A DNA stretch of 64,000 nt from contig NW_027266343.1 of NCBI RefSeq assembly GCF_022045235.1, forward strand, positions 8,122,001-8,186,000. Direction: 5' to 3'. Positions 2,154 through 42,413 of the stretch are shown piece after piece; position 1 is the stretch's first letter; each line of letters starts with the position of its first letter. Source of the DNA: Haliotis cracherodii (Eukaryota). The notes beneath the pieces are model-generated. The model did not search any database, had not been told where the DNA came from, and saw only the letters and a program-made list of their open reading frames with translations. Position numbers and translations under genes: made by a program.

Positions 2154-3548
2154 TCATACTGTTATTGTTTGTGAGCCAGAACCGATGTCCACAATCCTTG
2201 CGCGTCTTTCGAGAGATATCCGTTTGCCTCCGGGACGGATGACGTCACAATGGACTGAGTTTTGCAATGTGAGCTTGCCAGTCAAGATGGATACTTCAAT
2301 GTCCGCTTGGCAAGATGCAATTTCAGAAAAGGTCTCGGGGTCATAGGTGATGGTGCAAACTGTTGGAAGATCGAGGAATACTGCCCTGAGAGACCAACTT
2401 CCGTGATAAATTCTCATGATGCTTCCAGGAACATATGCCTCGTCCGTGCATGTGACTTGTACAGATCCAGGGCAACCCTTGACGGCGATAATGGGATCTG
2501 GTTTCAGTATTGGCTCGGCTGATGCATCTGTAAGTAAATCCAAAGGATTATTAACTCAAAGTAAAAACACGTAAATGTTGGACACAAATAAGCATTACCG
2601 TAGTTTCGGTGCATCTTTCTTGCTTGCTTCAATAGCTAATGTCCACATGGATACAATGTGTGAAGCCCACGCCGTGATATTGCTGAAATATTGCTCAAAT
2701 ATTCCCCTGTGTGCCGAGGATGAGAACACTTACTTTTAAGAACGTACACGTTATATCATAGCTAGCTTCAATAGCTAATGTCATCTAAAAGTGACAAGTG
2801 AAGTGGAAATATTCCCCTGCGTGCCGAGGATGGTGAGAACACTTACTTTTAAGAACGTACACGTCGAGGAGGTGGTACTGATCTGTGCTTCCTGTACCAA
2901 TAACATGACAGAGGTAATATCCAGAAAGACCATTTGTGATGTTCTTGACTGTAGCAGTAGCCTCCACAGAACTGTCTTCAGGAATCTGGGGAATCACTGG
3001 ACCTTGTTGTCTCCCAAGCCCTTGTTCTCTTGACCACATGGATTGCTCAAAGCAGGGGTTCGTGAAGAAGTAGCGTCCACAGGACAGGAATGTCCACTTC
3101 ACTCTGTCATACTGCTCGCCCGGATGTAGAGTAACCGGGCACGTGAGTGTGACGTCATCACCGGATGTGAAGGAAAGTCTTGACTGCTCTATTGAGAGTA
3201 AATGATTGAACGAAGAGATAATTAATGGAATTTGGAATCTAAAGCTGGAATGTAAATTTTGACTGGTCAAACTATTCTTGTCCAGATTACCAATATGAAG
3301 CATGAATGAACTTACTGACCTTCACAAAATCAAGCAAAAGACAACACACTTGCCAGCCAGTGACCTCACATGATTAGAATCATTAGCATTTAAGTCTAGC
3401 TCAATGTAATATTTAAGATATTTTTGCTGAGTCCTATGTTAAGAGTATATACTGAATAGTACGCACCGTAAGAGTCTGGCAGGAAACTCAACTGTTCCGT
3501 GACCATGGGCAGACACAGGAGAACGACGGCCAGTCCAGTGAGGGTCAT
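2154..3548 (-). CDS. Secreted two-Ig-domain protein, copy 1 (265 aa); exons 3467-3548, 2847-3188, 2154-2527
   Basis: ATG at 3548 starts a hydrophobic leader, MTLTGLAVVLLCLPMVTEQLSFLPDSY. Splice sites: donor G|GTGCGT at 3466, acceptor tcaatAG at 3189, donor A|GTAAGT at 2846, acceptor ttacAG at 2528. Both introns are phase 1 and the frame is open to TGA at 2154. D1 has an Ig V-like pattern: VTLTC, W at C+15, TVKNITNGLSGYYLC. D2 has VQVTC-66aa-C. AATAAA lies at 2104-2109. Confidence 0.85.
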
Positions 3549-3981
3549 CTTGGATTTGCTGAAGTGTCCCACCGTCTTGTGTTTAAATCCCCTCCTTGTA
3601 TTTACATGACACACTGACCTATCTTCAAAACAAATATATTTGCCCTAATCACCGTCACACCATGGTAAGTAACTATAACACTCCTTGGGTAAATCGTTAA
3701 ACGTTTTAAAGTAGGTGCAATGGGGTTATACCTATTGCTACCTTTGGCATACCAGAAACTTAAGACTGTAAGCACGAAACCCAGATTCGCCTGGATTATG
3801 TTTCTAGGTTTTTCAGCAGCATACCAGTGCTCGTGGGTTTCACCAAACTTTATTTTTAAAAATAAGACCTATATAATGGCTAAGGCTTCTTCATGTGTCA
3901 CTAAACCTTTTTGGTCACACTGTGGTCATCTTCCTCTTTCTATAAAATATAGACGGTTTTTAACGCTGTGATATAACTGAA

Positions 3982-4327
3982 GGTGAGGTGAAATGGGGTT
4001 TAACGTCGCGTCCAAGATTATTGCACTTATATAGCGACGTGCATCTACGTGTGTGTGTTTGTGTGTGTGTGTGTGGCTGCTTGTACTAGTCCGGACATAT
4101 GCCGATTTATAGTGCTGGCTCACTGAGATACCATGCCGCAGTTTAACATGACACAGTACTGACTCCTATCCGACCAGTCCTTGTTTTAGCCCCTTAATGC
4201 CGAGCGCAAGAGAGGGTAACAACAAGTACCATCTTTTAACGTCTTTTGGTATGACGCGGCTGGGGATCGAACCCCGAACCTTCCGCTCTCCGGGCGGACG
4301 CTGTACCATTAGACCACGGAGGCGGTC
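3982..4327 (-). mobile_element. tRNA-derived SINE, family B (also at 13550-13895; internally deleted at 22936-23094)
   Basis: A and B boxes at the right end, internal (ca)n, (cacct)n tail and a perfect 14-bp TSD gtgatataactgaa (3968-3981 / 4328-4341). Confidence 0.9.
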
Positions 4328-4870
4328 GTGATATAACTGAAATAGTGTTCCTAGTGGCAATCAGCCACACTTCTCACGCACTCGTGCACTTCAGACATGA
4401 TCATGTGAAGGGTTCATCTCTTTTGCCACGAGGAATCTATTTGTGCCAAGGTCATTACCGACCATTTGCTGCTTATGAAAACGTCTTTTTATTACGAACG
4501 CCCAAGCGCTTTACTTACTTTTACAAACATTTTTCGCTTACATAATTGTAAGAATGGCGGGTGCTGTCGGCAGGGCAGGACATGCTTACCCTTTTCGCAA
4601 ACACCTAGTCTCATCACTGATTTTCAGTGGTCCATTCATATAATTGCCACAGATATTTGCCCTTTATGCCAAGTGGAATGTGTTCGGCAGTAAATCTAGG
4701 CTGGATATTCTCTTGCATTGACAATTTATATTTACTTGATGCCCCACACTTTGATAATGTCATCTCACTATTCCTGTAGATGGACCATTTTCTGTCAACA
4801 CTGTTGCAACAGTGACCATCTCTCACGACACATGTCCAGTATCATGGTAGTGTATGGTCCATGTGGGCCA

Positions 4871-5135
4871 GACAGCGAAGATCCGGGTAGATAATAGGTC
4901 TTCGCAACCCATGCTAGCTTAAGAGGCGACTATACTTGTCGTAAGAGGCGACTAACGGGATCGGGTGGTCAGGCTGGCTGACTTGGTTGATGCATGTCAT
5001 TGTATCATAATTGCGTAGATCGATCCTCATGATGTCAATGACAGGATTGTCTGGTCCAGATTCGATTATTTACAGACCGCCGCCATATAGCTGGAAAATT
5101 GTTGAGTGTAACGTTCAACAAACAACAAACTAACA
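4871..5135 (+). mobile_element. SINE-like retroposon, family C (non-tRNA head); paralogous copies at 14443-14708 and 23642-23908
   Basis: Matches dispersed copies at ~55156, ~56108, 63095 and ~63385. It has a (caaa)n tail and no recognisable A/B boxes. Confidence 0.8.
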
Positions 5136-5240
5136 ATCTAACGTCCAAGGACAAAGTGAAACCGCATTAACACAACTTGAAGATTTGATTGTAACTGTAT
5201 GGTTCTGGTAGTGGACGCATGGATGAGTTAAACCAAAATA

Positions 5241-7277
5241 TACTCTTAAAAAAGAAGAAGCGCACAGGTAGATTTTAGTAAATTTATTGTACCTAATAAA
5301 GTCGATATATTTAACTTAATATCATAGATACAAATATGAAATTTTGGAGCTCGATAGTCACATGTTTTCGTTGTATATAGATAATTTATGTGCTCTTCTT
5401 TTTGCTGATGATGTTTCTGCTCTCTCAGATAGTTGTGCCCAGTTTCAAAAGAAAATTAATGCTTTGGAAATATTTTGTAATAAAACAGGCATGCAAATTA
5501 ACTTTAAAAAAACAAAAGTAATTGTATTTAGGCAAGGTGGTCATCTTCGCAGTTATGAAAAGTGGTTTTATCATGGTGAACCTATTGAAACTGTTTCAAG
5601 CTATAGATATCTTGGCTTAATGTTTACACCTAAGCTTGTATGGAGTAAGGCACAAACTACTCTAGCATCCCAAGCCACCAAAACAATTTTAGCCATTAAC
5701 TCTTTTCGAAGGAAAATTGGTAATATCACTTGTACAGATCTGTTTAAGGTTTTTGATTCTATGGTCACCCCCATCTTAACCTATGGCTCTGAAATTTGGT
5801 GGACTTGCTATTGTAAAAAAATCGAATCTGTCCAAATCACCTCTTGTAAGCATTATTTAAAAGTAAACAAATCAACCTGCTCAAATATGGTTTTAGGGGA
5901 ATGTGGGAGGTTTCCTTTACAACTCACTTACATGACTAAAGTAATTAAATATTGGTGCAGGCTCTTACATCTTCAACCCCACAGATTACCTTCCCAATGC
6001 TATTTAATGCTTAAATCTTTAGATGATGTTGGGCGGGTAACTTGGGCGACTAAAGTTAGAAATATTTTATTCCAATTTGGGTTTGGATTTTGTATGGCTC
6101 AATCAACAGGTGGGTGACTCTAAAGCTTTTATTCTCCATTTTAAGCAAAGGCTCAAAGATAATTTACAGCAATTCTGGAGTGCTTCTGTAAACTCTTCTC
6201 CAAAATGTGATCTTTATAAGCATTTTAAATCCATGTTAAATGTTGAAAGGTACTTGTCATGTCCACTCCCTACCCATTTAAGTATTGCTGTTACTAAATT
6301 CAGATGTTCAAATTTTAAAATAGCTTTAGAAACTGGCAGATATAGTAAAACAGACCGTTCACTCAGATTCTGTAACTATTGTAGTAGTAAGGGAGTTAAT
6401 GTCATTGAGGATGAATTCCATGTACTCTTTTATTGTAATTTATATTCTGCCCTAAGACAAAAATACCTTGTTAATCTTCCTATGCCTACTCATTACAGTA
6501 ATTCTCATGTGATAAATATTCTTAGTAATTATAATGAGCAAACATTATTTCTAGTTTGTAAATTCTTATATTATGCTCACAAAATAATTAATGATAAATT
6601 CTGTGCCCTGTAAATGTCATGCTCACATGTCTGTATTTTGGGCCATTGGCCTTTTACTGAATAAACATGTCTGTCTGTCTGTCTGTCTGTTTTCGTTGTA
6701 CAAAGGCATTGAAAACTGTTCATTGTCATGTTACGTAAAGCCACAAGGTAGGTGGACCAGTCGAATGTAGCGATCCTGTGCAGGGGTGGTAACTCTTGGT
6801 CGGCCGGTTCTCGGACGGTCTGCAGTGGAATTGAACTGTGTGTATCGGTCACAAAGTCGACAAATAGTGCCATGGTGGACGTTGAAGTGGCGTGCAACAG
6901 AAGACCACTGTTCCCCTCTTTGGATACGTCCTATGACGATGTTCCGATCGGCAGCGCTGTGTCTCGGCATTTTCGAACTTGAAAAATGTTGACAGCTGAC
7001 TGACAAATTATTGGCTTATGCTTTCTTTTTTATCGCCACTACCATGAGTTACGAATGCGATAACTTGCACGTGCATTTTGCTTTACTGTTTTCCTCCATG
7101 ACATTTTTCAACAAGTGTGAAAACAATGCCGTTTAAAACGTTGCAAATCGACACCTTTGTCGAATTTTAGGCAACCAACAATGTTCAATAACATATATCC
7201 AATTTATATACCGGATTTTTTTGTAGCCAGGTTCAATGAACTGCATACTACCTGTGCGTTTCTTTTTTTGAAGAGTG
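5241..7277 (-). mobile_element. Internally deleted Tc1/mariner transposon (also 14813-16835 and 24012-26024)
   Basis: ~30-bp TIRs ((t/c)actctt(a/c)aaaaaag..gcgcacaggtag) flanked by TA. The minus-strand ORF at 6731-6970 encodes a Tc1 N-terminal HTH with a GRPR motif (DRPRTGRPRVTTPAQDRYIRL). Confidence 0.88.
5376..6687 (+). mobile_element. 5'-truncated, frameshifted LINE (reverse transcriptase C-terminal half; RTE-X/CR1-group-like) nested in the Tc1 element
   Basis: LLFADD RT motif, YRYLG, and a C-terminal CxxC...EDEFH...C motif. It ends in AATAAA plus a (gtct)n tail, has a 13-bp TSD tgttttcgttgta (5363-5375 / 6688-6700), and a frameshift near 6085. Clade assignment is from memory. Confidence 0.9.
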
Positions 7278-7289
7278 TATGCTAAAGCA

Positions 7290-7530
7290 TATTGTTGTTT
7301 CCCTGCCTGGCGCATCCGGGTGATAAAACAAGGGGATTTGCTAGGAGTCAGTATATTGTGTCTGAGTGGGGTATTCATGTTAAACTGCAGCTAGGTATCT
7401 CAGTAGGCTAGCACTATAAAACCGGCATTAGTCCGGACTAATACAAACAGCCACATACGTGCATGCATGTCACTAAAAAGTGCAATAATATTGAACGCGA
7501 CGTTAAACCCCATTTCACCCCACCTCGCCC
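7290..7530 (+). mobile_element. Older 5'-truncated family B SINE (also ~16845-17090 and ~26035-26280)
   Basis: Diverged match to the body and tail of family B. Confidence 0.7.
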
Positions 7531-7940
7531 TATAGGGTTAAGTTTAGTCGACTCTACGTTTGTCTCTGCAGTCTGATATATTTCAATGGGTCGAAGTACT
7601 TAGATGTGTCATTGTAGGTAATAAGAACCCGGATTTATTCTTTCTTTCTGATCAAATGATATAAATAAGATCAATTGCTACTTTCAGCAGTAATATTTGA
7701 TTGGACATATCTTTCTTTTGGATTGATGAATAGCAGCACCAACCAATGCTTATGCAGAAAATCAGTTTATATTTTCCTTAAAAAGGATGGACATGAGTGC
7801 AATTTACTCTTGAACAATATACCACATTTTAGTATAACTGTGTCATTATAAAACCATTTTATAACAAAAGTAAGAGCGTTATTTGTATGACTTAAACATT
7901 AAAGCTGATAAAAGGTTTGCGTCAAACGAAGATCAACTGA

Positions 7941-8113
7941 GTGAGTGAGTGAGTCAGTGAGTATGGTTTTAAGCCGCTTTTAGCAATATTCCAGCAATAT
8001 CATGGCGGGGGACACCAGAAATGGGCTTCACACATTGTACCCATGTCGGGAATCGAACCCGGGTCTTCGGCGTGACGAGCGAACGCTTTAACCACTAGGC
8101 TACCTGACCGCCC
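7941..8113 (-). mobile_element. Family A SINE present only in unit 1
   Basis: A/B boxes, (tgag)n tail and TSD aagatca(a/g)ctga. Empty sites are at ~17490 and ~26680. Confidence 0.9.
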
Positions 8114-8719
8114 AAGATCAGCTGAATGAGAACGCATGTTGTAAATTATGCAACGAACGATTCCATGTGCATGTAATGGCACACTTAACTTTGGAGAGAT
8201 CTTGTGTCAACAACGTCTCTGTGATGTCGTTACCAACATGCCAAGACCTTAGAAAGCTCGCAATCACCTCACATATCCAATTAGTCGGGTGAGTGTCATC
8301 TTGGATGTGCCCTGATCCCGAGATGTTTGACCTTTGACTATTTACACAGCTCATGCCCATCTTCAGCATAGCTTAGCTTACCCTCTCGGGTAAGGTATTG
8401 GACGTTAATGAAACTAACCTCAACAAAGTTTTATTCCTTTGAACTCATACGGTCGATATATCAAGATACGTACCAACTCAACTTTCCGATGTGCTTCCTA
8501 TCACTGCCAGAAAATGCTGGGAAATACTCAGCCGAAATTACTATGCCTAAAAAGAAGGGGGTAGTGGGAATCATTGAGACATATCTTCTGATCTATATGG
8601 CATTGGCAAATGGAAATGATATGATCATATGGGCTGGGGAGGAGACAATCACATCTAATGGTTGGTATGATGAGATGGTGGCGCAATGTGTTGTTACAGA
8701 GGTCGTTGGTCAAATTCGA

Positions 8720-9230
8720 AATTTGCATTTTGCAGCCAACGTAACTAATATGTTTTTCAGACATGCGTGAATTCTTTGGAGCATGCCTCTTATGAGTCGA
8801 CCAATGTCAGCTTGAATCATGCTGTTCCACTCATCAGTGAGAACAACACCAAGTTTATTGAGAGTGGTGGATGGATTTTGACGTTGACGTACACGTCTGC
8901 CATTGATGTCCAGACGTGTTCAATGAGGTAAAGGTCAGGACAGAGTACTAGCCATGGCATGACATGGATGTTTTGCTGTTGGAGGTATTGGGTAACAAGC
9001 CTCTTACAGCAGTTGCCTGTTGCAACTGATCCCTTATCTAAATGTCAGTTTGCAATCTGTCCTGGGCTGGAGTTGGTTCCCCTGGGCGTCCAGATCGGCG
9101 TCGATCTGCTGACGACAGAATGAATCACACATGAAGCGATTGGGCAATATATTCTGACGTGTGTCCACCTGCAACATGCCTATTGCACGTAAACGTTCAG
9201 CACTTGCACACGACGCAGGATCAATGCTAT
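8720..9230 (-). mobile_element. Second, decayed Tc1-like transposase relic (also ~18090-18630 and ~27275-27810; partial at ~33912-34135 and ~39165-39390)
   Basis: Fragments RRSGRP..TPAQD..IR, W...PDL..IEH and L.DEWNS..QADI..LI..M..R..AC occur in broken frames. Confidence 0.7.
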
Positions 9231-9438
9231 TTGTTCCATAATAATTAAATGTGTTAAAGTGTCTCCGAGGGTTTGGTTCCAAGAAAACAATATGCGTCTA
9301 CTCATACCCAAATATGAGTGACAACGGTAAATCAGGCCCATGCACGTGCTGTCCGAGGTCACGTTCTTTATGACTGTCACGATGTTGTGTTTGGGGGCTT
9401 GATTTCTTGGAAAATATTCCTGCCACATAAATCACTTA

Positions 9439-9613
9439 CTGTAAACTAACGGTTATAACGAACTCGCTTATAACGAACTGACGGATATAACGAACTTCCT
9501 TTTTGGTCCCGACTACTTGCCGTAGTCATGCTGTATATGTACTTATAACGAACTAGGTAATAACGAACTAAAATTAGTAGTCCCTTTGAGTTCGTTATAA
9601 CCGTACGTTACTG
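9439..9613. mobile_element. 175-bp MITE, pogo/Tigger-like ends (also 18844-19018 and 28025-28199)
   Basis: TIR cagtaaa..acggttataacgaac, TA flanks and internal tataacgaac repeats. Confidence 0.85.
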
Positions 9614-10051
9614 TACTTTCATTGCCAGACATTGGTGTATTTACCTGTAGTTTCACCTCTTAACAAATCAACCCTATGTGGTTGTGCATGGTTTGTGAAA
9701 CTGATGCAAGTCCTACTAACCTGGACAGAGGAAAGACAAAAGATCGGATCCATCATACACGCAAAAGCCATTTCAAAATGAAAGCACGAACTTTATATTG
9801 TCAGAGTGAGCAGGATTCGGCTAATATCTCTGAATGCTTATTTGTATTAAAAATTGATCAAGGTAACTGAAGGGTCAAACAGTATTTTGATCAATATTTT
9901 ACAATATGTCTGGTCATAATGTCATTATAAATAATCCGGGAAAAGTGAACCAGTGATTGCACAACAATTTTAAAAAATGCATAAGAAATAGTCAAATTCA
10001 TTTAGGCCTATGTAAATCTTTTTTTACCTGCAATATTCATAATATGCAGTA

Positions 10052-10460
10052 TTTTGCATCACGGACGTGGTTTGTTTCATGTTTGTTGCATCACGGACGT
10101 GGTTTGTTTCATGTTTGTTTTGCATCACGGACGTGGTTTGTTTCATGTTTGTTTTGCATCACGGACGTGGTTTGTTTCATGTTTGTTGCATCACGGACCT
10201 GGTTTGTTTCATGTTTGTTTTGCATCACGGACGTGGTTTGTTTCATGTTTGTTTTGCATCACCGGACGTGGTTTGTTTCATGTTTGTTTTGCATCACGGA
10301 CGTGGTTTGTTTCATGTTTGTTTTGCATCATGGACGTGGCCTGTTTCGTGTTTGTTTTGCATCACGGACGTGGTCTGTTTCATGTTTGTTTTGCATCACG
10401 GACGTGGTCTGTTTCATGTTTGTTTTGCATCACGGACGTGGTTTATTTCATGTTTTTGTT
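10052..10460. repeat. 34/32-bp minisatellite, ~12 copies (also ~19456-19830 with ~11 copies and ~28638-29045 with ~12 copies)
   Basis: Unit catcacggacgtggtttgtttcatgtttg(tt)ttg. Confidence 0.95.
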
Positions 10461-10799
10461 TGTTCCGTAATCATTGTGTTGTAAGACTTGGTTTTGCATT
10501 TAATTTTCATCATGTCTTATGGTATGATGGTAGGACGCCAAATAACTTCACCATGGCTTCGATTTCAGATCGTGCTTGCCCATTTACACAATTTCGAAGT
10601 TTGATGAAAGACTAATCACTATCATGTAGGTGGTAATTTAGCCACATGGTTGATATCCCTGGACGCCAAATCAGCAATTTGCTGTTGATTGATCAGAAAG
10701 GGGAAACAAAAACACAAATTATTCTGCAATTTTTTTAATGATGCATCTATATATTGAAACATGTCAGATATCAAGCAGATATTCACCTGGTCCATGATA

Positions 10800-13133
10800 T
10801 CATATTGTGATTGTTTGTGAGCCAGAACCGAGGTCCACAATCCTTGCGCGTCTTTCGAGAGATATTCGTTTGCCTCCGGGACGGATGACGTCACAATGGA
10901 CAGAGTTTTGCAATGTGAGCTTGCCAGTCAAGATAGATACTGCAATGTCCGCTTGGCAAGATGCAATTTCAGAAAAGGTCTCGGGGTCATAGGTGATGGT
11001 GCAAACTGTTGGAAGATCGAAGAACACTGCCCTGAGAGCCCAACTTCCGTGATAAATTCTCATGATGCTTCCAGGAACATAGGCCTCGTCCGTGCATGTG
11101 ACTTGTACAGATCCTGTCGCACCCTTGATGACCATTATAGGATCTGGTTTCAGTGTTTGAACAGCCGATGCATCTGTTAGAAAATCCAAAGCGGTTTATT
11201 AGTTTATTAGACGACACATTATCTACACATTAGGAACAATGAAACAATATATAGTGGACGGTGTAATACAGTAGTGTCAGCGCTTTCTCTATAGCGTAAA
11301 CGCCAGAGAATAACCAGTCTCGATTATCTGCCGAATCAGATAACGAGAAGACACCAGGTGCTCAAGAATTTTCTTCCTTTTGACTTGTTATTTATTCCAT
11401 TTACAGCTGAAACATTGTCGAGCCATGTTAAATGTTAACCCACTTACTCAAGAACTAAAGCGATGAAGAAATTATTTTTTACAATTGCCAGGGTCCTGTT
11501 ACAAGAAGCGGTTTTGGCACTACGACTGTCGTAACCATATCCTCATTTAACATAAATTTAGGATAAATATATAAATATATATCATTGCTTTGTGGAAAGA
11601 AAAAATAATACTTACAGCACTGACTTACGACGTCAATACTTTATCAACATGGATATGTTCAGTTTAAAAGTTTCAAGGAACATTTCGTAAAAATATCTAA
11701 CAATAAACAGTGTCTTAGAAGCAGTTGTGAAAAATCATCTTCATTGAGAAACGTTGTCATTATGAGAATAAATGGGATTTTGTTCGCATTGGTGTTATAT
11801 TTTAGCTTGATTGAAAAGTTTAAAAGGGAAGTGTAAATATTACCCTGTGCAATGTAAAAAATGTGCTGAGATCCTAAACACAAACCTAAACACATATCTT
11901 GTCACATACTTTGGACGCGCTGAGTTAGAAGCTGAACATTTGTAAGGTCAAAATATGGGAAAGACCCGTATCTTAATCCCCAATATTATGCACTATATTT
12001 ACACGTGTATAAATACTAAACACATTCAGACACTTAACATGTTTAAATTCTAAACATTTTTAGTAATGAAACATATTTACAAATTGAATCTAAACATGTT
12101 TAGATTATGTTGATGTTGTGCTGAAGTGATGTTCAGGCTGTGAGACGAGATATCATTTCATGTGTTTAGACCCTAAACGTGATTAGATAGGACACACCAA
12201 ATGTGTATACCGTTCAGGACTTAAACACATTCTTAAACATGTTTAGATATAAACATGTACTTTATTTGTTTTCATTCTAAACATCTTTTACAATATTTGT
12301 CAATATGAGAACACTTACGTTTAAGAACGTGCACGTTATATTATAGCTAGCTTCAATAGCTAATGTCATCTAAAAGTGACAAGTGAAGTAGAAATATTCC
12401 CCTGCGTGCCGAGGATGATGAGAACACTTACTTTTAAGAACGTACACGTCGAGGAGGTGGGTCTGATCTGTGCTTCCTGTACCAATAACATGACAGAGGT
12501 AATATCCCGAAAGACCATTTGTGATGTTCTTGACTGTAGCAGTAGCCTCCACAGAACTGTCTTCAGGAATCTGGGGAATCACTGGACCTTGTTGTCTCCC
12601 AAGCCCTTGTTCTCTTGACCACATGGATTGCTCAAAGCAGGGGTTCGTGAAGAAGTAGCGTCCACAGGACAGGAATGTCCACTCCACTCTGTCATACTGC
12701 TCGCCCGGATGTAGAGTAACCGGGCACGTGAGTGTGACGTCATCACCGGATGTGAAGGAAAGTCTTGACTGCTCTATTGGGAGTAAATGATTGAACGAAG
12801 AGATAATTAATGGAATTTGGAATCTAAAGCTGGAATGTAAAGTTTGACTGGTCAAACTTTTCTTGTCCAGATTACCAACATGAAGCATGAATGAACTTAC
12901 TGACCTTCACAAAATCAAGCAAAAGACAACACACTTGCCAGCCAGTGACCACACATGATTAGAATCATTAGCATTTAAGTCTAGCTCAATGTAATTTTTA
13001 AGATATTATTGTTGAGTCCGATGTTAAGAATATATACTGAATAGTACGCACCGTAAGAGTCTGGCAGGAAACTCAACTGTTCCGTGACCATGGGCAGACA
13101 CAGGAGAACGACGGCCAGTCCAGTGAGGGTCAT
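10800..13133 (-). CDS. Secreted two-Ig-domain protein, copy 2 (265 aa); exons 13052-13133, 12432-12773, 10800-11173
   Basis: Same exon sizes (82/342/374 nt), canonical GT/AG sites and an open frame. Intron 1 is 278 nt and intron 2 is 1258 nt. Confidence 0.85.
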
Positions 13134-14948
13134 CTTGGATTTGCTGCAGTGTCCCACCGTCTTGTGTTTAAATCTCCTCCTTGTATTTACATGACACACT
13201 GACCTATCTTCAAAACAAATATATTTGCCCTAATCACCGTCACACCATGGTAAGTAACTATAACACTCCTTGGGTAAATCGTTAAACGTTTTAAAGTAGG
13301 TGCAATGGGGTTATACCTATTGCTACCTTTGGCATACCAGAAGCTTAAGACTGTAAGCACGAAACCCAGATTCGCCTGGATTATGTTTCTAGGTTTTTCA
13401 GCAGCATACCAGTGCTCGTGGGTTTCACCAAACTTTATTTTTAAAAATAAGACCTATATAATGGCTAAGGCTTCTTCATGTGTCACTTAACCTTTTTGGT
13501 CACACTGTGGTCATCTTCCTCTTTCTATAAAATATAGACGGTAACTGAAGGTGAGGTGAAATGGGGTTTAACGTCGCGTCCAAGATTATTGCACTTATTT
13601 GGCGACGTGCATCTACGTGTGTGTGTTTGTGTGTGTGTGTGTGGCTGCTTGTACTAGTCCGGACATATGCCGATTTATAGTGCTGGCTCACTGAGATACC
13701 ATGCCGCAGTTTAACATGACACAGTACTGACTCCTATCCGACCAGTCCTTGTTTCAGCCCCTTAATGCCGAGCGCAAGAGAGGGTAACAACAAGTACCAT
13801 CTTTTAACGTCTTTTGGTATGACGCGGCTGGGGATCGAAACCCGAACCTTCCGCTCTCCGGGCGGACGCTGTACCATTAGACCACGGAGGCGGTCGTGAT
13901 ATAACTGAAATAGTGTTCCTAGTGGCAATCAGCCACACTTCTCACACTCGTACACTTCAGACATGTTCATGTGAAGGGTTCATCTCTTTTGCCACGAGGA
14001 ATCTATTTGTGCCAAGGTCATTTCCGACCATTTGCTGCTTATGAAAACGTCTTTTTATTACGAACGCCCAAGCGCTTTACTTACTTTTACAAACATTTTT
14101 CGCTTACATAATTGTAAGAATGGCGGGTGCTGTCGGCAGGGAAGGACATGCTTACCCTTTTCGCGAACACCTGGTGTCATCACTGATTTTCAGTGGTCCA
14201 TTCATATAATTGGCACAGCTATTTGCCCTTTATGCCAAGTGGAATGTGTTCGGCAGAAAATCTAGGCTGGATATTCTCTTGCATTGACAATTTATATTTA
14301 CTTGATGCCCCACACTTTGATAATGTCATCTCACTATTCCTGTAGATGGACCATTTTCTGTCATCACTGTTGCAACAGTGACCATCTCCCACGACGCATG
14401 TCCAGTATCATGGTAGTGTATGTATGAGGTCCATGAGGGCCAGACTGCGAAGATCCGGGTAGATAATAGGTCTTCGCAACCCATGCTAGCTTAAGAGGCG
14501 ACTATACTTGTCGTAAGAGGCGACTAACGGAATCGGGTGGTCAGGATGGCTGACTTGGTTGATGCATGTCATTGTATCATAATTGCGTAGATCGATGCTC
14601 ATGATGTCAATGACAGGATTGTCTGGTCCAGATTCGATTATTTACAGACCGCCGCCATATAGCTGGAAAATTGTTGAGTGCAACGTTAAACAAAAAACAA
14701 ACAAACAATCTAACGTCCAAGGACAAAGTGAAACCGCATTAACACAACTTGAAGATTTGATTGTAACTGTATGGTTCTGGTAGTGGACGCATGGATGAGT
14801 TAAACCAAAATATACTCTTAAAAAAGAAGAAGCGCACAGGTAGATTTTTAGTAAATTTATTGTACCTAATAAAGTCGATATATTTAATTTAATATCATAG
14901 ATACAAATATGAAATTTTGGAGCTCGATAGTCACATGTTTTCGTTGTA

Positions 14949-29384: not shown

Positions 29385-31932
29385 TCATATTGTGATTGTT
29401 TGTGAGCCAGAACCGAGGTCCACAATCCTCGCGCGTCTTTCGAGAGATATTCGTTTGCCTCCGGGACGGATGACGTCACAATGGACTGAGTTTTGCAATG
29501 TGAGCTTGCCAGTCAAGATAGATACTGCAATGTCCGCTTGGCAAGATGCAATTTCAGAAAAGGTCTCGGGGTCATAGGTGATGGTGCAAACTGTTGGAAG
29601 ATCGAAGAACACTGCTCTGAGAGACCAACTTCCGTGATAAATTCTCATGATGCTTCCAGGAACATAGGCCTCGTCCGTGCATGTGACTTGTACAGATCCT
29701 GTCGCACCCTTGATGACCATTATAGGATCTGGTTTCAGTGTTTGAACAGCCGATGCATCTGTTCGAAAATCCAAAACGGTTTATTAGTTTATTAGACGAC
29801 ACATTATCTACACATTAGGAACAATGAAACAATATATAGTGGACGGTGTAATACAGTAGTGTCAACGCTTTCTGTATAGCGTAAACGCCAGAGAATAACC
29901 AGTCTCGATTATCTGCCGAATCAGATAACCAGAAGACACCAGGTGTTCAAGAATTTTCTTCCTTTTGACTTGTTATTTATTCCATTTACCGCTGAAACAT
30001 TGTCGAGCCATATTAAATGTTAACCCACTTACTCAAGAGCTAAAGCGATGAAGAAATTATTTTTTACAATTGCCAGGGTCCTGTTACAAGAAGCGGATTT
30101 GGTACTACGACTGTCGTAACCATATCCTCATTAAACATAAATTTAGGATACATATATAAATATATATCATTGTTTTCTGGAAAGAAAAAATAATACTTAC
30201 AGCACTGACTTACGACGTCAATACTTTATCAACATGGATATGTTCAGTTTAAAAGTTTCAAGGAACATTTCGTAAAAATATCTAACAATAAACAGTGTCT
30301 TAGAAGCAGTTGTGAAAAATCATCTTCATTGAGAAACGTTGTCATTATGAGAATAAATGGGATTTTGTTCGCATTGGTGTTATATTTTAGCTTGATTGTT
30401 TAAAAGGGAAGTGTAAATATTACCCTGTGCAATGTAAAAAATGTGCTGAGATCCTAAACACAAACCTAAACACATATCTTGTCACATACTTTGGACGCGC
30501 TGAGTTAGAAGCTGAACATGTGTAAGGTCAAAATATGGGAAAGACCCGTATCTTAATCCCCAATATTATGCACAATATTTACACGTGTATAAATACTAAA
30601 CACATTCAGACACTTAACATGTTTAAATTCTAAACATTTTTAGTAATGAAACATATTTACAAATTGAATCTAAACATGTTTAGATTATGTTGATGTTGTG
30701 CTGAAGTGATGTTCAGGCTGTGAGACGAGATATCATTTCATGTGTTTAGACCCTAAACGTGATTAGATAGCACACACCAAATGTGTATACCGTTCAGGAC
30801 TTAAACACATTCTTAAACATGTTTAGATATAAACATGCACTTTATTTGTTTTCATTCTAAACATCTTTTACAATATTTGTCAATATGAGAACACTTACTT
30901 TTAAGAACGTACAGGTTATATCATAGCTTGCTTAAATAGCTAATGTCATCTAAAAGAGACAAGTGAAGTGGAAATATTCCCCTCTGTGCCGAGGATGATG
31001 AGAACACTTACTTTTAAAAACGTACACGTCGAGGAGGTGGGTCTGATCTGTGCTTCCTGTACCAATAACATGGCAGAGGTAATATCCAGAAAGACCATTT
31101 GTGATGTTCTTGACTGTAGCAGTAGCCTTCAAAGAACTGTCTTCAGGAATCTGAGGAACCACTGGGCCATCTTGTCTCCCAAGCCCTTGTTCTCTTGACC
31201 ACATGGATTGCTCATAGCAGGGTATCGTGAAGAAGTAGCGTCCACAGGACAGGAATGTCCACTCCACTCTGTCATACTGCTCGCCCGGATGTAGAGTAAC
31301 CGGGCACGTGAGTGTGACGTCATCACCGGATGTGAAGGAAAGTCTTGACTGTTCTATTAGTTATAAATGATTGAACTAAGAGATAATTAATAGAATTTGG
31401 AATCTAAAATGAGAATATAAATTTTGTTTTGGTCAAACTATTCTTGTCTAGATTCTACCCCAGGCTTGTATCAGTGTGGAGTGAGGGAGTTGGTCATGTG
31501 GGGTTTAACACAGTGACCCTCTTAAACAATATGACGAGATGAAATCAGGCAACAACTGCCGATTAATTGGAAGTCGAAGGCCTTAAACCTCATCCGGACT
31601 TCATATCAGATCATATCATCAACATCAACATGTAATGCAATCGAATAATCATAGTATTCACTGACCTTTCCAAATAGTGTCCAAAACAACACGCTTGTCA
31701 GCCAGTGACCACATGTCATTATAATCATTAGCATTGAAAAATTTAGTTCTAGTTCAATTTAATTTGTGAGATAATTTGGCTGAATTAATCGTTTTTCTTC
31801 TTTTTTTCGAAAGAGTTCTATGTTAAGAGTATATACTGAATAGTACGCACCGTAAGAGTCTGGCAGGAAACTCAACTGTTCCGTGACCATGGGCAGACAC
31901 AGGAGAACGACGGCCAGTCCAGTGAGGGTCAT
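29385..31932 (-). CDS. Secreted two-Ig-domain protein, copy 4 (265 aa); exons 31851-31932, 31012-31353, 29385-29758
   Basis: Canonical splice sites and an open frame. Intron 1 is the longer type (497 nt). D1 variant is YFFTIPCYEQ...RQDGPVVP. Confidence 0.85.
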
Positions 31933-32235
31933 CTTGGATTTGCTGCAGTGTCCCACCGTCTTGTGTTTAAATCCCCTCCTTGTATTTACATGACACACTG
32001 ACCTATCTGCTAAACAAATACATTTACCCTGATTAGCGCCACGTCAAATTGCAAGTAACTATAACACTCCTTTGGTAAATCTTCAGGCGTGTTAAAGGAA
32101 CAGAAGTAGACCTCAAGTTATCCAGCGCCGTTCATTCCTTCGGGATGCACTGCCATTACTGTTTGAAAAGGTTAATACACCAACCCCACTACACCAGAGG
32201 CTATGCTCTACATGTTCAACCATTGATGACGAAGT

Positions 32236-32514
32236 TAGTGAGTGAGTTGGGTTTAACGCCGCTTTTAACAGTATTACAGTTATATCGCGGCGTGTCAGCT
32301 TAATGTGGGAGGAAAGCCCGAAGTGATGCAGGTCTCAGACGTTTACCACTTCGGTGAAACTCACGAGCACGGGCATGGTGCTTACAAACCTAGAAACATA
32401 ATCGGGGCGAACCGGGATTCGAACCAACAATCATAGGTTTCTGGCATGTCTAAGGGACGCAACTCTGCACAGCGAATCTCGGCGCCTTAGACGACTGGGC
32501 CACCCGTGCCCCCC
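32236..32514 (-). mobile_element. tRNA-derived SINE, family D (also 37488-37767 and 44404-44679)
   Basis: Head ggggcacgggtggcccagtcgtctaaggcg, B box ggttcgaatccc and (actc)n tail. Confidence 0.85.
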
Positions 32515-32961
32515 TTTACATCTGAATCAGGCATGGAATGACGAAATGAAATATTGTTTTCTGAACTATAAAATAATGTTTAGCCAAATAATTAGGCCAT
32601 GTTGCGACATTTGAATTTACCGGCGTCATACCGGGGGCGCCCTGACAGCATTCGACTCAAAGTTCTTCTTTGTACAATAATAAGACTTGTCAGCTGAGCG
32701 GAATAATGCCGATAACGAAAATAGATACAGTTTGTCACGCGAATGTGTTTTGGGAAGGTAAATACTGGTATCCTGTCTCAGGAAAACATTGTATTTAGCG
32801 AACCTTGGCGTGCTCCTCGTGCTCACGCAGTAATACGCACCCTATGAAGTCATCAGAAACGTCCAATCTAACGTACACAAACAGAAACTGATATTGGTAT
32901 AATTCATGAAACATGGCATCATATTGCCTTAGTTGCTTATACTGTCACAATCAAAATCACA

Positions 32962-33500
32962 TGTGACCAACCAAGGGACCTTATGGGTGAAAAATCACAT
33001 TTTGATTTCTTATAATTTTTTTAAACTACAATATCTTAGTAACATAAAAATACACTTCACAACCATCACTTCATATGTATTGCAGATACATGGTATCAAA
33101 CATTTGGACTTATTTTCTGCAAAATCCAATTTTCAGTCTTGAAGTAACAGCTGTTGTAATAATTTAGATATAATAACTGATTAATCGAAAGTAGACATGG
33201 TAGCTCAATTTTTATTAATAATGCTTTTATTACATTGCAAACTAAAAAGAAAGAAGTAAGATATTTTTTCACAGTCCTCAAACATGGCGATATTTAAGAA
33301 GAAAGTTGACAACAGACATTTGGACTCATTTTCTGCAAAGTCCAACTCTCAGGCTGATGACTGTTTATGTAATAATTGCAGTTTTTAGATATAATGGCGA
33401 TTTTTACGGAAGAAAGTTGAGGTCAAACGTCTTTCTTTGTGACGTCACAGCAGAATTGTATCCTAGCACCCATAAGGTCCCTTTCTCCCCGCGGGTCACA
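32962..33500. mobile_element. Non-autonomous TIR element (also 38215-38753 and a longer copy at 45128-45779)
   Basis: Inverted ends tgtgacc...agggaccttatgggtg / cacccataaggtccct...ggtcaca with an AT-rich interior. Confidence 0.65.
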
Positions 33501-34644
33501 TATCTGGTAGTGGTACAATGTGACACTAATCAAACGCAGGCCGTCACTTTGTAGGCACTTGGCTAGGCGCCTTCATTGGCAATGACAAGACAAATTTGTT
33601 CAGTCGAATCCCGATGGTTCTAAGTTTTTCCCAGTTAGTCACGAGTCTGGCCGGCCTGACCCTGTCCTACATTGATAGATGGGCTGAGAGTAAGTAAAAC
33701 TATGTGAGTATAGTTGGTGTTGCGTTTCTTTGTTATGCGAGTATGAATACTGATAGAGACAACTTGGAGTAAGCGTCGTTAGACCAATCACTCCATGACG
33801 GAGCCGAACCGCTGGGGCCAAGGCGAGTGGCAAAGTCATGGCGTAATTGACCATGATGACCAGGAACGGCAATACATTTAGTAACTGTAGTAGGGTCGCA
33901 GTTACGACACTTATCTAAATGTCAGTTTGCAACCGATTTCTTAATGAAATCGTTCTGATTAATCTGTCCCGGGCTGGAGTTGGTGCCCCTGGTCGTCCAG
34001 ATCGGCGTCGATCTGCTGACAACAGAATGAAACACACATGAAGCGATTGGGAAACAATATTCTGACGTGTGTCCACCTGCAACATGCCTATGGCACGAAA
34101 ACGTTCAGCACCTTCCACACGACGCAGGATCAATGCTATTTTTTCCTTAATGATTAAATGTGTTTAAGAAAGTGTCTCCGAGGGTTTGGTTCCAAGAAAA
34201 CAATATGCGTCTACTCATAACCAAATGTGAGCGACAACGGTAAATCAGGCATAACGCCCATTGCACGTGCTGTTCGAGGTCACATGCTTCATGACTGCCA
34301 CAATGTTGTGTTTGGGAGCTTCTTTTCTTGGTAAATATTCTTGCCACAGAAATCACTGTGTTTGTTTTGTTCCGCAATCATTGTTTTGTAAGACTTGGTT
34401 TTGCATTAATTTTAAATTTCATCATGTTATGATGGTAGGACGCCAAATGACTTTACCATGGCTTCGATTTCAGATTGAAGTTTGATGAAAAAGTCATCAC
34501 AATCATGAACGTGGGAATTTGGCCACTTGGTTGATATCCCTGAACGCCAGATCAGCAATTAGCTGTTTATCGATCAGAAAGGAGAAACAAAAACACAAAT
34601 TATTCTGCAATGTTTTTTTAAAAATGCATCTATATTGAAACATG

Positions 34645-37185
34645 TCAGTTATCAAGCAGACCGAGGTCCACAATCCTCGCGCGTTTTAGGAGAGATATCC
34701 GTTTGCCTCCGGGACGGATGACGTCACAATGGACTGAGTTTTGCAATGTGAGCTTGCCAGTCAAGATGGATACTGCAATGTCCGCTTGGCAAGATGCAAT
34801 TTCAGAAAAGGTCTCGGGGTCATAGGTGATGGTGCAAACTGTTGGAAGATCGAAGAATGCTGCTCTGAAAGACCAACTTCCGTGATAAATTCTCATGATG
34901 CTTCCAGGAACATAGGCCTCGTCCGTGCATGTGACTTTTACAGATCCTGTTGCACCCTTGATGACCATTATAGGATCTGGTTTCAATATTTGAACAGCCG
35001 ATGCATCTGTTAGAAAACCCAAAGCAGTTTATTAGTTAATTAGACGACACATTATCTACACATTAGGAACAATGAAACAATATATAGTGGACGGTGTAAT
35101 ACAGTAGTGTCAGCGCTTTCTCTATAGCGTAAACGCCAGAGAATAACCAGTCTCGATTATCTGCCGAATCAGATAACGAGAAGACACCAGGTGCTCAAGA
35201 ATTTTCTTCCTTTTGACTTGTTATTTATTCCATTTACAGCTGAAACATTGTCGAGCCATGTTAAATGTTAACCCACTTACTCAAGAACTCAAGCGATGAA
35301 GAAATTATTTTTTACCATTGCCAAGGTCCTGTTACAAGAAGCGGATTTGGCACTACGACTGTCGTAACCATATCTTCATTAAAAATAAATTTAGGATACA
35401 TATATAAATATATATCATTGCTTTGTGGAAAGAAAAAATAATACTTACAGCACTGATTTACGACGTCAATACTTTATCAACATGGATATGTTCAGTTTAA
35501 AAGTTTCAAGGAACATTTCGTAAAAATATCTAACAATAAACAGTGTCTTAGAAGCAGTTGTGAAAAATCATCTTCATTGAGAAACGTTGTCATTATGAGA
35601 ATAAATGTGATTTTGTTCGCATTGGTGTTATATTTTAGCTTGATTGAAAAGTTTAAAAGGGAAGTGTAAATATTACCCTGTGCAATGTAAAAAATGTGCT
35701 GAGATCCTAAACACAAACCTAAACACATATCTTGTCACATACTTTGGACGCGCTGAGTTAGAAGCTGAACATTTGTAAGGTCAAAATATGGGAAAGACCC
35801 GTATCTTAATCCCCAATATTATGCACTATATTTACACGTGTATAAATACTAAACACATTCAGACACTTAACATGTTTAAATTCTAAACATTTTTAGTAAT
35901 GAAACATATTTACAAATTGAATCTAAACATGTTTAGATTATGTTGATGTTGTGCTGAAGTGATGTTCAGGCTGTGAGACGAGATATCATTTCATGTGTTT
36001 AGACCCTAAACGTGATTAGATAGGACACACCAAATGTATATACCGTTCAGGACTTAAACACATTCTTAAACATGTTTAGATATAAACATGTACTTTATTT
36101 GTTTTCATTCTAAACATCTTTTACAATATTTGTCAATATGAGAACACTTACGTTTAAGAACGTGCACGTTATATTATAGCTTGCTTCAATAGCCAATGTC
36201 ATCTAAAAGAGACACGTGAAGTGGAAATATTCCACCGTGTGCCGTGGATGATGAGAGCACTTACTTTTAAGAACGTACACGTCGAGGAGGTGTGTCTGAT
36301 CTGTGCTTCCTGTACCAATAACTTGACAGAGGTAATATCCAGAAAGACCATTTGTGATGTTCTTGACTGTAGCAGTAGCCTTCAAAGAACTGTCTTCAGG
36401 AATCTGAGGAACCACTGGGCCATCTTGTCTCCCAAGCCCTTGTTCTCTTGACCACATGGATTGCTCATAGCAGGGTATCGTGAAGAAGTAGCGTCCACAG
36501 GACAGGAATGTCCACTCCACTCTGTCATACTGCTCGCCCGGATGTAGAGTAACCGGGCACGTGAGTGTGACGTCATCACCGGATGTGAAGGAAAGTCTTG
36601 ACTGTTCTAATAGTTATAAATGATTGAACTAAGAGATAATTGATAGAATTTGGAATCTAAAATGAGAATATAAATTTTGTTTTGGTCAAACTATTTTTGT
36701 CTAGATTCTACCCCAGGCTTGTATCAGTGTGGCGTGAGGGAATTGGTCATGTGGGGTTTAACACAGTGACCCTCTTAAACAATATGACGAGATGAAATCA
36801 GGCAACAACTGCCGATTAATTGGAAGTCGAAGGCCTTAAACCTCATCCGGGCTTCATATCAGATCATATCATCAACATCAACATGTAATGCAATCGAATA
36901 ATCATAGTATTCACTGATCTTTCCAAATAGTGTCCAAAACAACACACGTGTCAGCCAGTGACCACATGTCATTATAATCGTTAGCATTGGAAAATTTAGT
37001 TCTAGTTCAATTTAATTTGTGAGATATTTTGGCTGAATTAATCGTTTTTCTTCTTTTTTTCGAAAGAGTTCTATGTTAAGAGTATATACTGAATAGTACG
37101 CACCGTAAAAGTCTGGCAGGAAACTCAACTGTTCCGTGACCATGGGCAGACACAGGAGAACGACGGCCAGTCCAGTGAGGGTCAT
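34645..37185 (-). CDS. Secreted two-Ig-domain protein, copy 5 (261 aa); exons 37104-37185, 36265-36606, 34645-35006
   Basis: Canonical splice sites and an open frame. The C-terminus is IVDLGLLDN*, caused by a deletion across the original stop codon. Confidence 0.85.
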
Positions 37186-39897: not shown

Positions 39898-42413
39898 TCA
39901 GTTATCAAGCAGACCGAGGTCCACAATCCTCGCGCGTTTTAGGAGAGATATCCGTTTGCCTCCGGGACGGATGACGTCACAATGGACTGAGTTTTGCAAT
40001 GTGAGCTTGCCAGTCAAGATGGATACTGCAATGTCCGCTTGGCAAGATGCAATTTCAGAAAAGGTCTCGGGGTCATAGGTGATGGTGCAAACTGTTGGAA
40101 GATCGAAGAATGCTGCTCTGAAAGACCAACTTCCGTGATAAATTCTCATGATGCTTCCAGGAACATAGGCCTCGTCCGTGCATGTGACTTGTACAGATCC
40201 TGTCGCACCCTTGACGACCAGTATAGGATCTGGTTTCAGTGTTTGAACAGCCGATGCATCTGTTAGAAAACCCAAAGCGGTTTATTAGTTAATTAGACGA
40301 CACATTATCCACACATTAGGAAGACTGAACCAATATATAGTGGACGTTGCATTACAGTAGTTTCAGCGCTTTCTCCATAGCGTAAACGCCAGAGAATAAC
40401 CAGTCTCGATTATCTGCCGAATCAGAAAACCCGAAGACACCAGGTGATCAAGAATGTCCTTCCTTATGATTTATTATTTATTCCATTTACAGCTGAAACT
40501 TCGTCGAGGCATATTAAGTGTTAACCCACTTCCTCAAGAACTCAAGCGATGAAGAAATTATTTTTTTACTATGGCCAGGGTCCTGTTACAAGAAGCGGAT
40601 TTGTCACTACGACTGTCGTAGCCATATTCTTTTTAAACATAAATTTAGGATAAATATATAAATATAAAAATGTTTTGTGGAAAGAAAAAATAATACTTAC
40701 AGTACTGATTTACGACGTCAAAACTTTATCAACATGGATATGTTCAGTTTAAAAGTATCAAGGAACATTTCGTAAAAATATCTAACAATAAACAGTGTCT
40801 TAGAAGCAGTTGTGAAAAATCATCTTCATTGAGAAACGTTGTCATTATGAGAATAAATGTGATTTTGTTCGCATTGGTGTTATATTTTAGCTGGCTTGAA
40901 AAGTTTAAAAAGGTAGTGTAAATATTACCCTGTGCAATGTAAAAAATGTGCTGAGATCCTAAAACACAAACCTAAACACATATCTTGTCACATACTAGTA
41001 CTTTGGACGCGCTGAGTTAGAAGCTGAACATGTGTAAGGTCAAAATATGGGGAAAACACGTATCTTAATCCCCAATATTATGCACTATATTTACACGTGT
41101 ATAAATACTAAACACGTTCAGACAGAACATGTTTAAATTCTAAACATTTTAAGTAATGAAAAATGTTTACAATCTTAACATGTTTAGATTTTTGGGATGT
41201 TGTGCTGAAGTGATGTTCAGGGTGTGAGACGAGATATCATTTCATGTGTTTTGACCCTAAACGTGATTAGATAGCACACACCAAATGTGTATACCGTTCA
41301 GGACTTAAACACATTCTTAAACATGTATTTTATGTGTTTTCATTCTAAACATTTTATTACAATATTTGTCAATATAAAAACACTTACTTTTAAGAACGTG
41401 CACGTTATATCATAGCTTGCTTCAATAGCTAATGTCATCTAAAAGTGACACGTGAAGAGGAAATATTCCCGTCTGTGCCGAGGATGGTAAGAACACTTAC
41501 TTTTAAGAACGTACACGTCGAGGAGGTGGTACTGATCTGTGCTTCCTGTACCAATAACATGACAGAGGTAATATCCAGAAAGACCATTTGTGATGTTCTT
41601 GACTGTAGCAGTAGCCTTCACAGAACTGTTTTCAGGAATCTGGGGAATCACTGGGCCTTCTTGTCTCTCAAGTCCTTGTTCTCTTGACCACACGGATTGT
41701 TCATGGCAGGGGATCTTGAAGTAGTAGCGTCCACAGGACAGGAACGTCCACTCCACTCTGTCATACTGCTCGCCCGGATGTAGAGTAACCGGGCACGTGA
41801 GTGTGACGTCATCACCGGATGTGAAGGAAAGTCTTGACTGTTCTATTGGGAATAAATGATTGAACGAAGAGATAATTAATAGAATTTGGAATCTAAAATG
41901 AGAATGTAAATTTTGTTTTGGTGAAACTATTCTTGTCTAGATCCTATCCCAGGCTTGTATCAGTGTGGAGTGAGGGAGTTAGTCATGTGGGGTTTAACAC
42001 AGTGACTCTCTTGAAAAATATGGCGATTTTGAAATCAGGCAACAACTGCCGATTAATTGGAAGTCGAAGGCCTTAAACCTCATCCGGACTTCATATCAGA
42101 TCATATCATCAACATCAACATGTAATGCAATCGAATAATCATAGTATTCACTGATCTTTCCAAATAGTGTCCAAAACAACATACTTGTCAGCCAGTGACC
42201 ACATGTCATTATAATCATTAGCATTTAGTTCTAGCTCAATTTAATTTGTGAGATATTTTGGCTGAATTAATCGTTTTTCTTCTTTTTCCGAAAGAGTTCT
42301 ATGTTAAGAATATATACTGAATAGTACGAACCGTAAAAGTCTGGCAGGAAACCGTACTGTCCCGTGACCATGGGCAGACACAGGAGAACGACGCCCAGTA
42401 CAGTGAGGGTCAT
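39898..42413 (-). CDS. Secreted two-Ig-domain protein, copy 6 (261 aa); exons 42332-42413, 41501-41842, 39898-40259
   Basis: Leader MTLTVLGVVLLCLPMVTGQYGFLPDFY and donor G|GTTCGT. It has the most divergent D1 (YYFKIPCHEQSVW) and an open frame. Confidence 0.85.

Follow-up and report, generated by a model that had tools for sequence, protein, structure and literature searches.

A mosaic tandem array of six intact genes for predicted secreted two-domain immunoglobulin-like proteins in the black abalone

The gene array

The window analysed here, a 64,000-nucleotide (nt) stretch of the genome of the black abalone Haliotis cracherodii (contig NW_027266343.1, positions 8,122,001 to 8,186,000 of the forward strand), carries six direct-repeat copies of one unit, each holding a three-exon gene for a predicted secreted protein with two immunoglobulin (Ig)-like domains. 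The array extends from position 2154, the stop codon of copy 1, to position 42413, the ATG of copy 6. The best overall explanation, held with reasonable confidence, is that of genes kept by selection, found only in the genus Haliotis, which encode a V-set domain followed by a C2-type domain and which have a mosaic history. The anatomy and history of the array are put forward with high confidence.

By repeat finding, the interval between copies is ~9.3 kb among the first four and 5.25 kb among the last three. Local matching with the copy-1 exons gave exactly six sets of three exons, all on the minus strand (Table 1). The exons were searched singly, and full gene models were joined for translation and substitution counts; for full-length searches and folds, the identical RefSeq proteins were used. 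Exons measure 82, 342 and 374 nt in copies 1-4, the third being 362 nt long in copies 5 and 6. All introns are GT..AG and in phase 1; intron 2 of copy 1 has a length of merely 319 nt. The products, of 265 residues (copies 1-4) or 261 residues (copies 5 and 6), contain no internal stops or frameshifts. The most divergent leader exon is that of copy 6 (7/82 nt). All six translations are letter-identical to H. cracherodii RefSeq proteins (XP_071090950, XP_071090952, XP_071091183, XP_071091125, XP_071090936 and XP_071090828), each of which carries the name "uncharacterized protein". Hence, the existing annotation of these loci has exon structures and stops that agree with the present models. The initial annotation, made from the sequence by itself, had described six intact copies with 82/342/362-374-nt exons and canonical phase-1 introns, and both the models and the RefSeq identity bear this out.

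Table 1. Positions of the array genes and accompanying features, in window coordinates unless stated otherwise. In the type code, the first letter stands for the leader and domain-1 type (X, Y, Z) and the second for the domain-2 type (A, B, C).
Feature	Extent	Exons 1 / 2 / 3	Strand	Product or remark
Copy 1, type X-A	2154..3548	3548-3467 / 3188-2847 / 2527-2154	-	265 residues; = RefSeq protein P0009
Copy 2, chimeric type X-B	10800..13133	13133-13052 / 12773-12432 / 11173-10800	-	265 residues; = P0008
Copy 3, chimeric type X-B	20169..22502	22502-22421 / 22142-21801 / 20542-20169	-	265 residues; = P0007
Copy 4, type Y-B	29385..31932	31932-31851 / 31353-31012 / 29758-29385	-	265 residues; = P0004
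Copy 5, chimeric type Y-C	34645..37185	37185-37104 / 36606-36265 / 35006-34645	-	261 residues; = P0011
Copy 6, type Z-C	39898..42413	42413-42332 / 41842-41501 / 40259-39898	-	261 residues; = P0013
Conserved proximal promoter with TTTAAA box	3549..3600		-	copy 1 example; box common to all six copies
Seventh, divergent paralogue	G000:C80:8115093-8117933 (L015:3093-5933)	76/345/338 nt	-	outside the window, 5 kb past its left edge
Long spacer, ~7 kb	3549..10799; recurs 13134-20168, 22503-29384		.	broken LINE reverse-transcriptase fragment and 34-nt tandem repeat
Short spacer, 2.7 kb	31933..34644; repeated 37186-39897		.	without an open reading frame suited as a further copy-5 exon

The signals around the genes are conserved in part. 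The TTTAAA box stands 39 nt upstream of the ATG in 6/6 copies, and a poly(A) signal (AATAAA or ATTAAA) follows 45-61 nt past the stop in copies 1-4. The ATTAAA carried by copies 2-4 is lost in copies 5 and 6.

When the complete 1.18-Gb assembly was searched in six frames with each of the two domains, the six copies and one further locus were recovered, seven loci in total. This seventh paralogue consists of leader, V and domain-2 exons, its introns are in phase 1, and its 252-codon frame is intact. The V domain shares 35% identity with those of the six copies and is, like the second domain, without the extra cysteine pairs described below; no counterpart was present among the annotated proteins searched. 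A word-indexed search with the domain-2 exon found no short fragments. Relatives outside H. cracherodii were identified in the red abalone H. rufescens (three adjacent loci, LOC124113883 to LOC124113885), H. rubra (two) and H. asinina (one). In a HMMER scan of 1.84 billion representative proteins with domain 2, one true relative cluster was found, the H. asinina protein; a 1537-residue repeat open reading frame (ORF) and a bacterial repeat protein (E = 3e-4) from the same scan were judged spurious. As far as these sequence searches indicate, the family is confined to abalones. No description of this two-Ig family was found in the literature on abalone Ig proteins.

Domains and end of the product

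Domain 1, encoded by exon 2, is a V-set domain. The exon-2 products match the Pfam V-set profile (PF07686) at 27.5-30.1 bits, with a cut-off of 26, over almost the full profile. The seventh paralogue scores 35.6 bits, and the full-length H. asinina and H. rubra proteins reach just 22.6-22.8 bits against the same cut-off of 26. The V-set core, composed of Cys44, Trp59 (at +15) and Y-Y-L-Cys121, is invariant in 12/12 family members, and the NITNGLSGYYLC motif is present. An extra cysteine pair, 64/73, is located directly past the C-strand tryptophan. This pair presumably resembles the C-C' disulfide of pIgR, CD300 and NKp44-type V domains. All domain-1 details given in the initial annotation (first cysteine, tryptophan at +15, second cysteine, motif and extra cysteine pair) are found again at these residues. 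A V-domain homodimer prediction scored 0.01, which counts neither for nor against binding.

Domain 2 has its canonical pair at Cys168/Cys235, with 66 residues between, and an extra pair at 199/214, exactly the arrangement (C-66aa-C plus an additional pair) that had been read from the letters. The nature of this domain was approached through structure. Modelled alone by AlphaFold, it forms an all-beta sandwich with a predicted local distance difference test (pLDDT) score of 70.5; the strands of Cys 199 and 214 come just before the strand holding the second canonical cysteine. In a Foldseek search of the PDB with this model, nearly all top matches belong to the Ig superfamily (IgSF), such as CD147 Ig0, PD-1, RAGE and MyBP-C, with template-modelling scores mostly of 0.4-0.56. 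VIA-align, which is independent of Foldseek, also ranked Ig domains first, with Z of 7-8.7 over ~85-95 residues; the best match has Z 8.7 for 90 residues at 2.1 A. The highest-ranking VIA-align matches are for the most part Ig domains, predominantly of the C2 or constant type: SYG-2, UNC-5, ICAM-1, ICAM-5, Rst, butyrophilin, B7-H6, Necl-4 and RAGE C1. A Z under 8 in this program may reflect a mere common arrangement, and since a Z near 8 is common, the support for an Ig fold is moderate. The domain 2 of the seventh paralogue matches the CD80-like C2-set_2 profile (PF08205) at E = 0.001 and 19.5 bits (cut-off 21), over profile positions 13-84 of 89. Domain 2 is, with moderate support from the models, Ig-like and of C2 type, its sequence having probably drifted past profile recognition. 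HMMER/Pfam and AlphaFold/Foldseek had been named in the initial annotation as ways to check the domains: the V-set match stands above its cut-off and the domain-2 model matches Ig domains.

Other comparisons of domain 2 were less informative. A profile of the seven domain-2 sequences, run against the PDB sequences, gave matches at E 0.06-0.9, nearly all to antibody light-chain V domains and covering the first third of the profile; these are a hint and no result. No relationship between domain 2 and domain 1 was visible in a profile-to-profile comparison (hhalign probability 0.6%). In the ESM Atlas, the full-length protein fell among generic IgSF clusters, with nothing more specific; domain 2 alone fell among unnamed phage clusters with low recognition, set aside as noise. 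In copy 1, domain 2 contains a fifth, unpaired cysteine, Cys160 (KGCPGS), which is also present in the red-abalone counterpart P0010. It could permit a covalent dimer.

The leader is the sole hydrophobic stretch of the product: its Kyte-Doolittle 19-residue mean is 1.78, and the later maximum is <=1.19. It consists of a 5-residue start and an 11-residue hydrophobic core, followed by a V-T-G/E and Q site. Two N-x-S/T sites, Asn110 and Asn142, are conserved. Past domain 2, a variable tail of <=10 residues leads to the end of the protein. No transmembrane segment and no glycosylphosphatidylinositol-like tail were seen in the hydropathy profiles and translations of the six products, and the V-set is their sole Pfam match, with no fibrinogen, lectin or chitin-binding domain. 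Likewise, the 2.7 kb of spacer from the copy-5 stop to the copy-4 promoter hold no candidate ORF for a transmembrane, fibrinogen or lectin-like exon. The product is thus predicted to be a small secreted glycoprotein composed of a cleavable leader, a V-set domain, a C2-type Ig-like domain and a stop. The same order, a leader, a V and a second Ig domain ending without a membrane anchor, had been claimed before, and hydropathy, translations and spacer ORFs agree with it.

The position of the 3' end is derived from genomic signals and from four RefSeq annotations (H. cracherodii, H. rufescens, H. rubra and H. asinina), which concord on the three-exon product and its end. In copies 5 and 6, a 48-nt deletion (seen at 34645-34700 and 39898-39953) removes the last codons and the stop. 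As a result, the frame enters the former 3' untranslated region, which gives the tail ...GLLDN and the shorter exon 3. This deletion is old, as the red-abalone protein P0006 ends in the same ...GLLDN tail.

These observations bear on whether the product is complete. A V domain followed by a C2 domain is the usual ectodomain of membrane receptors such as CAR/JAM, nectin and B7, and the structures nearest to domain 2 come mostly from Ig domains at the second or a later place in such multi-domain ectodomains; a transmembrane exon could have been missed or be alternatively used. Against this, 7/7 loci stop inside the domain-2 exon, and the tail is variable and was replaced through the deletion in copies 5 and 6 and in the red-abalone counterpart. 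Furthermore, poly(A) signals lie close behind the stop, the next promoter lies 2.7 kb downstream with no candidate exon between, and the same end recurs in the four independent annotations. A membrane receptor with an overlooked or alternatively used transmembrane exon is therefore improbable in the extreme.

Conservation and mosaic history

The six copies are 90-99% identical, and 44/265 protein positions vary. The pairwise ratio of nonsynonymous to synonymous substitution rates (dN/dS) is 0.21-0.91 for the whole coding sequence, 0.3-0.9 for domain 1 and 0.1-0.75 for domain 2; leader exon aside, no copy pair exceeds 1 over a whole domain. Copies 1-3 and copy 4 show the contrast between coding and non-coding parts most clearly: exon 1 is identical at 82/82 nt inside a block of 81% identity, exon 2 differs by 4-5% and intron 1 by ~19%. 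Between species, the H. asinina and H. cracherodii proteins are 78-81% identical, and domain 2 contains long invariant blocks in all four Haliotis species. The exons are conserved well above the introns, through purifying selection or exon-limited gene conversion, and the six intact genes appear to be kept by selection.

The initial annotation had taken the array for a candidate diversified recognition family, possibly for immune or gamete/self recognition. In an immune family of this kind, the paralogues would have different pathogen-binding surfaces, like FREPs or VCBPs minus the effector. Some features would suit it: predicted secreted products made of Ig domains alone, several gene copies in tandem, the new combinations of domain 1 and domain 2 that crossovers (described below) yield, and a dN/dS that nears 0.9 in pairs with copy 6. 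Variable sites are also mildly enriched around the extra cysteine pair of the V domain, where residues 62-105 (the C-to-E part) hold 11/44 of them (P = 0.036, or P = 0.08 when the other species are included), but this clustering is weak. The small number of variable positions and the dN/dS values of 0.2-0.9 speak against diversification. Moreover, the V domains of copies 2 and 3 are identical, the BC and FG loops are nearly invariant, even across species, and the whole genome holds seven loci. A diversified immune family is accordingly rather unlikely, and this part of the earlier claim is not upheld. The pattern is one of conserved genes, perhaps aided by exon-limited gene conversion, and not of a diversifying repertoire.

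The copies are mosaics of a few sequence types. The promoter, exon 1 and most of intron 1 are of type X in copies 1-3, Y in copies 4 and 5 and Z in copy 6, and exon 2 is grouped alike. Exon 3 and the 3' flank follow another division: type A in copy 1, B in copies 2-4 and C in copies 5 and 6. Read along the coding strand, the order in black abalone is Z-C, Y-C, Y-B, X-B, X-B, X-A. The 5' part of copy 2 is 97% identical to copy 1, and a stretch of the same copy that begins shortly before exon 2 and runs to the 3' end is 97% identical to copy 4; copy 3 differs from copy 2 by 0-2% in every segment. In copy 5, the 5' part is 1.2-2.4% from copy 4, and exon 3 with the downstream flank is 0-1.7% from copy 6. 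The crossover junction is located ~100 nt upstream of exon 2, late in intron 1, in copies 2 and 3, and around intron 2 in copy 5.

The red abalone provides the parental types. Its proteins each fit one of them (885 = X-A, 884 = Y-B, 883 = Z-C). Domain 2 of copy 1 is nearest to red-abalone P0010, with 6 differences compared to 10-14 to its own paralogues, and both domains of copy 4 are nearest to red-abalone P0012, with 3 differences each. Domain 2 of copy 6 is nearest to copy 5 (4 differences) and to red-abalone P0006 (5 differences). From these sequence affinities, three genes, Z-C, Y-B and X-A, were probably present in the ancestor shared by red and black abalone.

The three chimeric copies (2, 3 and 5) would have been produced by misalignment of neighbouring genes and unequal crossing-over inside introns. 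Since both introns are in phase 1, such chimeras stay in frame. Crossovers in introns between Z-C, Y-B and X-A neighbours would yield exactly the type order observed. In this model each new copy also duplicates the adjoining spacer, which is matched by the two short spacers, 99.7% identical, and by the three long spacers, 95-97% identical to one another. The chimeras are 0-3% from their parental halves, less than the difference between orthologues of the two species; hence, they probably arose in the black-abalone lineage, the three visible red-abalone proteins being the sample. The description of the family as recently expanded is right for part of the expansion, copies 2, 3 and 5 being young chimeras.

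The youth of the chimeras invites another explanation, in which the copies are duplicates with little or no function and the frames are intact because of recency and gene conversion. The small distance of copies 2, 3 and 5 from their parental halves fits this, as do an exon synonymous divergence below that of the introns, as conversion gives, and the state of the poly(A) signal in copies 5 and 6. However, the three gene types are intact in both red and black abalone, and the family is intact at ~80% identity in H. rubra and H. asinina. The seventh paralogue, at 35% identity, keeps its three-exon phase-1 structure and open frame, and exon 1 is unchanged within its 81%-identical block. Functionless duplication is therefore highly improbable as an account of the array.

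Several results weigh against the favoured explanation, that of selected genes for secreted V plus C2-type proteins with a mosaic history. The synonymous divergence of the exons is also below the intron divergence, so that exon-limited gene conversion could mimic part of the selection signal. Copies 5 and 6 have no canonical poly(A) signal in the 300 nt that follow the stop, and every relative in the protein collection comes from genome annotation and none from transcript assembly. Concerning the domains, domain 2 of the six copies has no Pfam Ig-family match at E <= 10, and the full-length AlphaFold model, built from a 12-sequence alignment, has a pLDDT of 45, domain 1 included, which is too poor to use. 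For the history, the count of three ancestral genes, which is based on three red-abalone proteins, is possibly too low.

Related proteins, possible role and flanking DNA

The order of the two domains, V-set then C2-type, is the same as in the V-C2 receptors (the CTX members CAR, JAM and CLMP, nectin/Necl, B7/butyrophilin and SYG/Neph/Rst). The Ig domains of SYG-2, Rst, Neph1, Necl-4, B7-H6 and butyrophilin also provide the best structural alignments of the domain-2 model. The abalone proteins differ from these receptors by having no transmembrane segment or cytoplasmic tail, and there is no relationship at the sequence level. Four cysteines are found in the C2 domain of CLMP and CAR, with the additional bond of CLMP joining strands A and G (PMC10056934). 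Domain 2 of the abalone proteins also has four, but the members of the putative extra pair, 199 and 214, lie in two adjacent middle strands of the model and not in A and G.

Among gastropods, the VIgL proteins (FREP, CREP and GREP) are products of multigene families: behind a signal peptide come one or two IgSF domains, then an interceding region and, at the C terminus, a fibrinogen, C-type lectin or galectin domain (PMC10075465). The abalone frame, in contrast, stops directly past the second Ig domain, with no effector exon, and the family has a low copy number and low diversity. No similarity to the Ig domains of FREP, CREP or VCBP was found in protein searches at E <= 0.001, which is a further point against an immune family of that kind. 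In amphioxus VCBP, two V domains accompany a chitin-binding domain; insect hemolin, the molluscan defence molecule (MDM) and Dscam are built of at least four Ig domains. They are likewise invertebrate IgSF proteins proposed for recognition, whereas the abalone proteins consist of two domains and nothing else. The initial annotation had found no fit to FREP/CREP/GREP, VCBP, hemolin/MDM or Dscam; this holds, and the sequence searches gave relatives in Haliotis alone.

Closest in kind, by their general description, are ZIG of Caenorhabditis elegans and Beat-Ia and ImpL2 of Drosophila. These are secreted proteins with a signal peptide, two Ig domains and no anchor, which act as soluble ligands or modulators of cell-surface IgSF or hormone signalling; they are mostly of I-set type and widely conserved. 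The abalone family, on the contrary, combines a V-set with a C2-like domain and is found in one genus, and no homology was detected. It is a genus-restricted family of a familiar kind, already annotated as uncharacterised proteins.

The architecture suggests, tentatively and at somewhat less than even odds, that the proteins act outside the cell as soluble binders. The V domain would contact a partner, for example a cell-surface receptor, a matrix component or a microbial surface, and the conserved second domain would serve as a stalk or as a second contact. A bolder version is unlikely: the phase-1 introns would let crossing-over re-pair V and C2 exon types, and individuals or species would carry different sets of combinations that recognise microbes, gametes or self.

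Abalone gamete-recognition genes are lineage-restricted. The Haliotis restriction, tandem duplication and domain-level turnover of the present family recall lysin/sp18 and VERL/VEZP, and a gamete or egg-coat role could be considered on this basis. However, the identity of 78-81% between H. asinina and H. cracherodii and the invariant blocks of domain 2 are unlike the rapid divergence of lysin. In addition, no paper naming the RefSeq locus or protein identifiers, orthologues included, was found. Such a role is very unlikely.

Secreted IgSF proteins restricted to one lineage are candidates for recognition in animals without antibodies, and abalones are both farmed and endangered, with serious infectious diseases. 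The family is also limited in size and easy to work with: it comprises seven loci and an orphan second domain, and its duplications can be followed directly in the DNA. Its value is descriptive unless a role is established through expression or binding data.

The long spacers (Table 1) each contain, on the plus strand, the same broken reverse-transcriptase fragment of a long interspersed nuclear element (LINE), at 5344-6613, 15095-16190 and 24106-25375, which was duplicated along with the gene unit. The neighbouring reverse-transcriptase ORFs are fragmentary: they match RVT_1 profile positions 143-204 of 205, split over two overlapping frames. This agrees with the earlier statement that broken transposable-element ORFs lie beside intact genes. 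A 34-nt tandem repeat of ~11 units is located ~200 nt past the stops of copies 2, 3 and 4 (10221-10596, 19590-19965 and 28738-29181) and is absent from the short spacers.

Upstream of copy 6, the segment 42414-45883 is 89-94% identical to parts of the short spacer and contains no exon of the family; possibly it is what is left of another unit. Runs of N occur at 50631-50894 and 51060-51194. Two stretches upstream of the gene array, 53016-54061 and 60033-61800, are long tandem arrays; their periods are 42 nt and 16 nt, and the ORFs over them are repeat artefacts.

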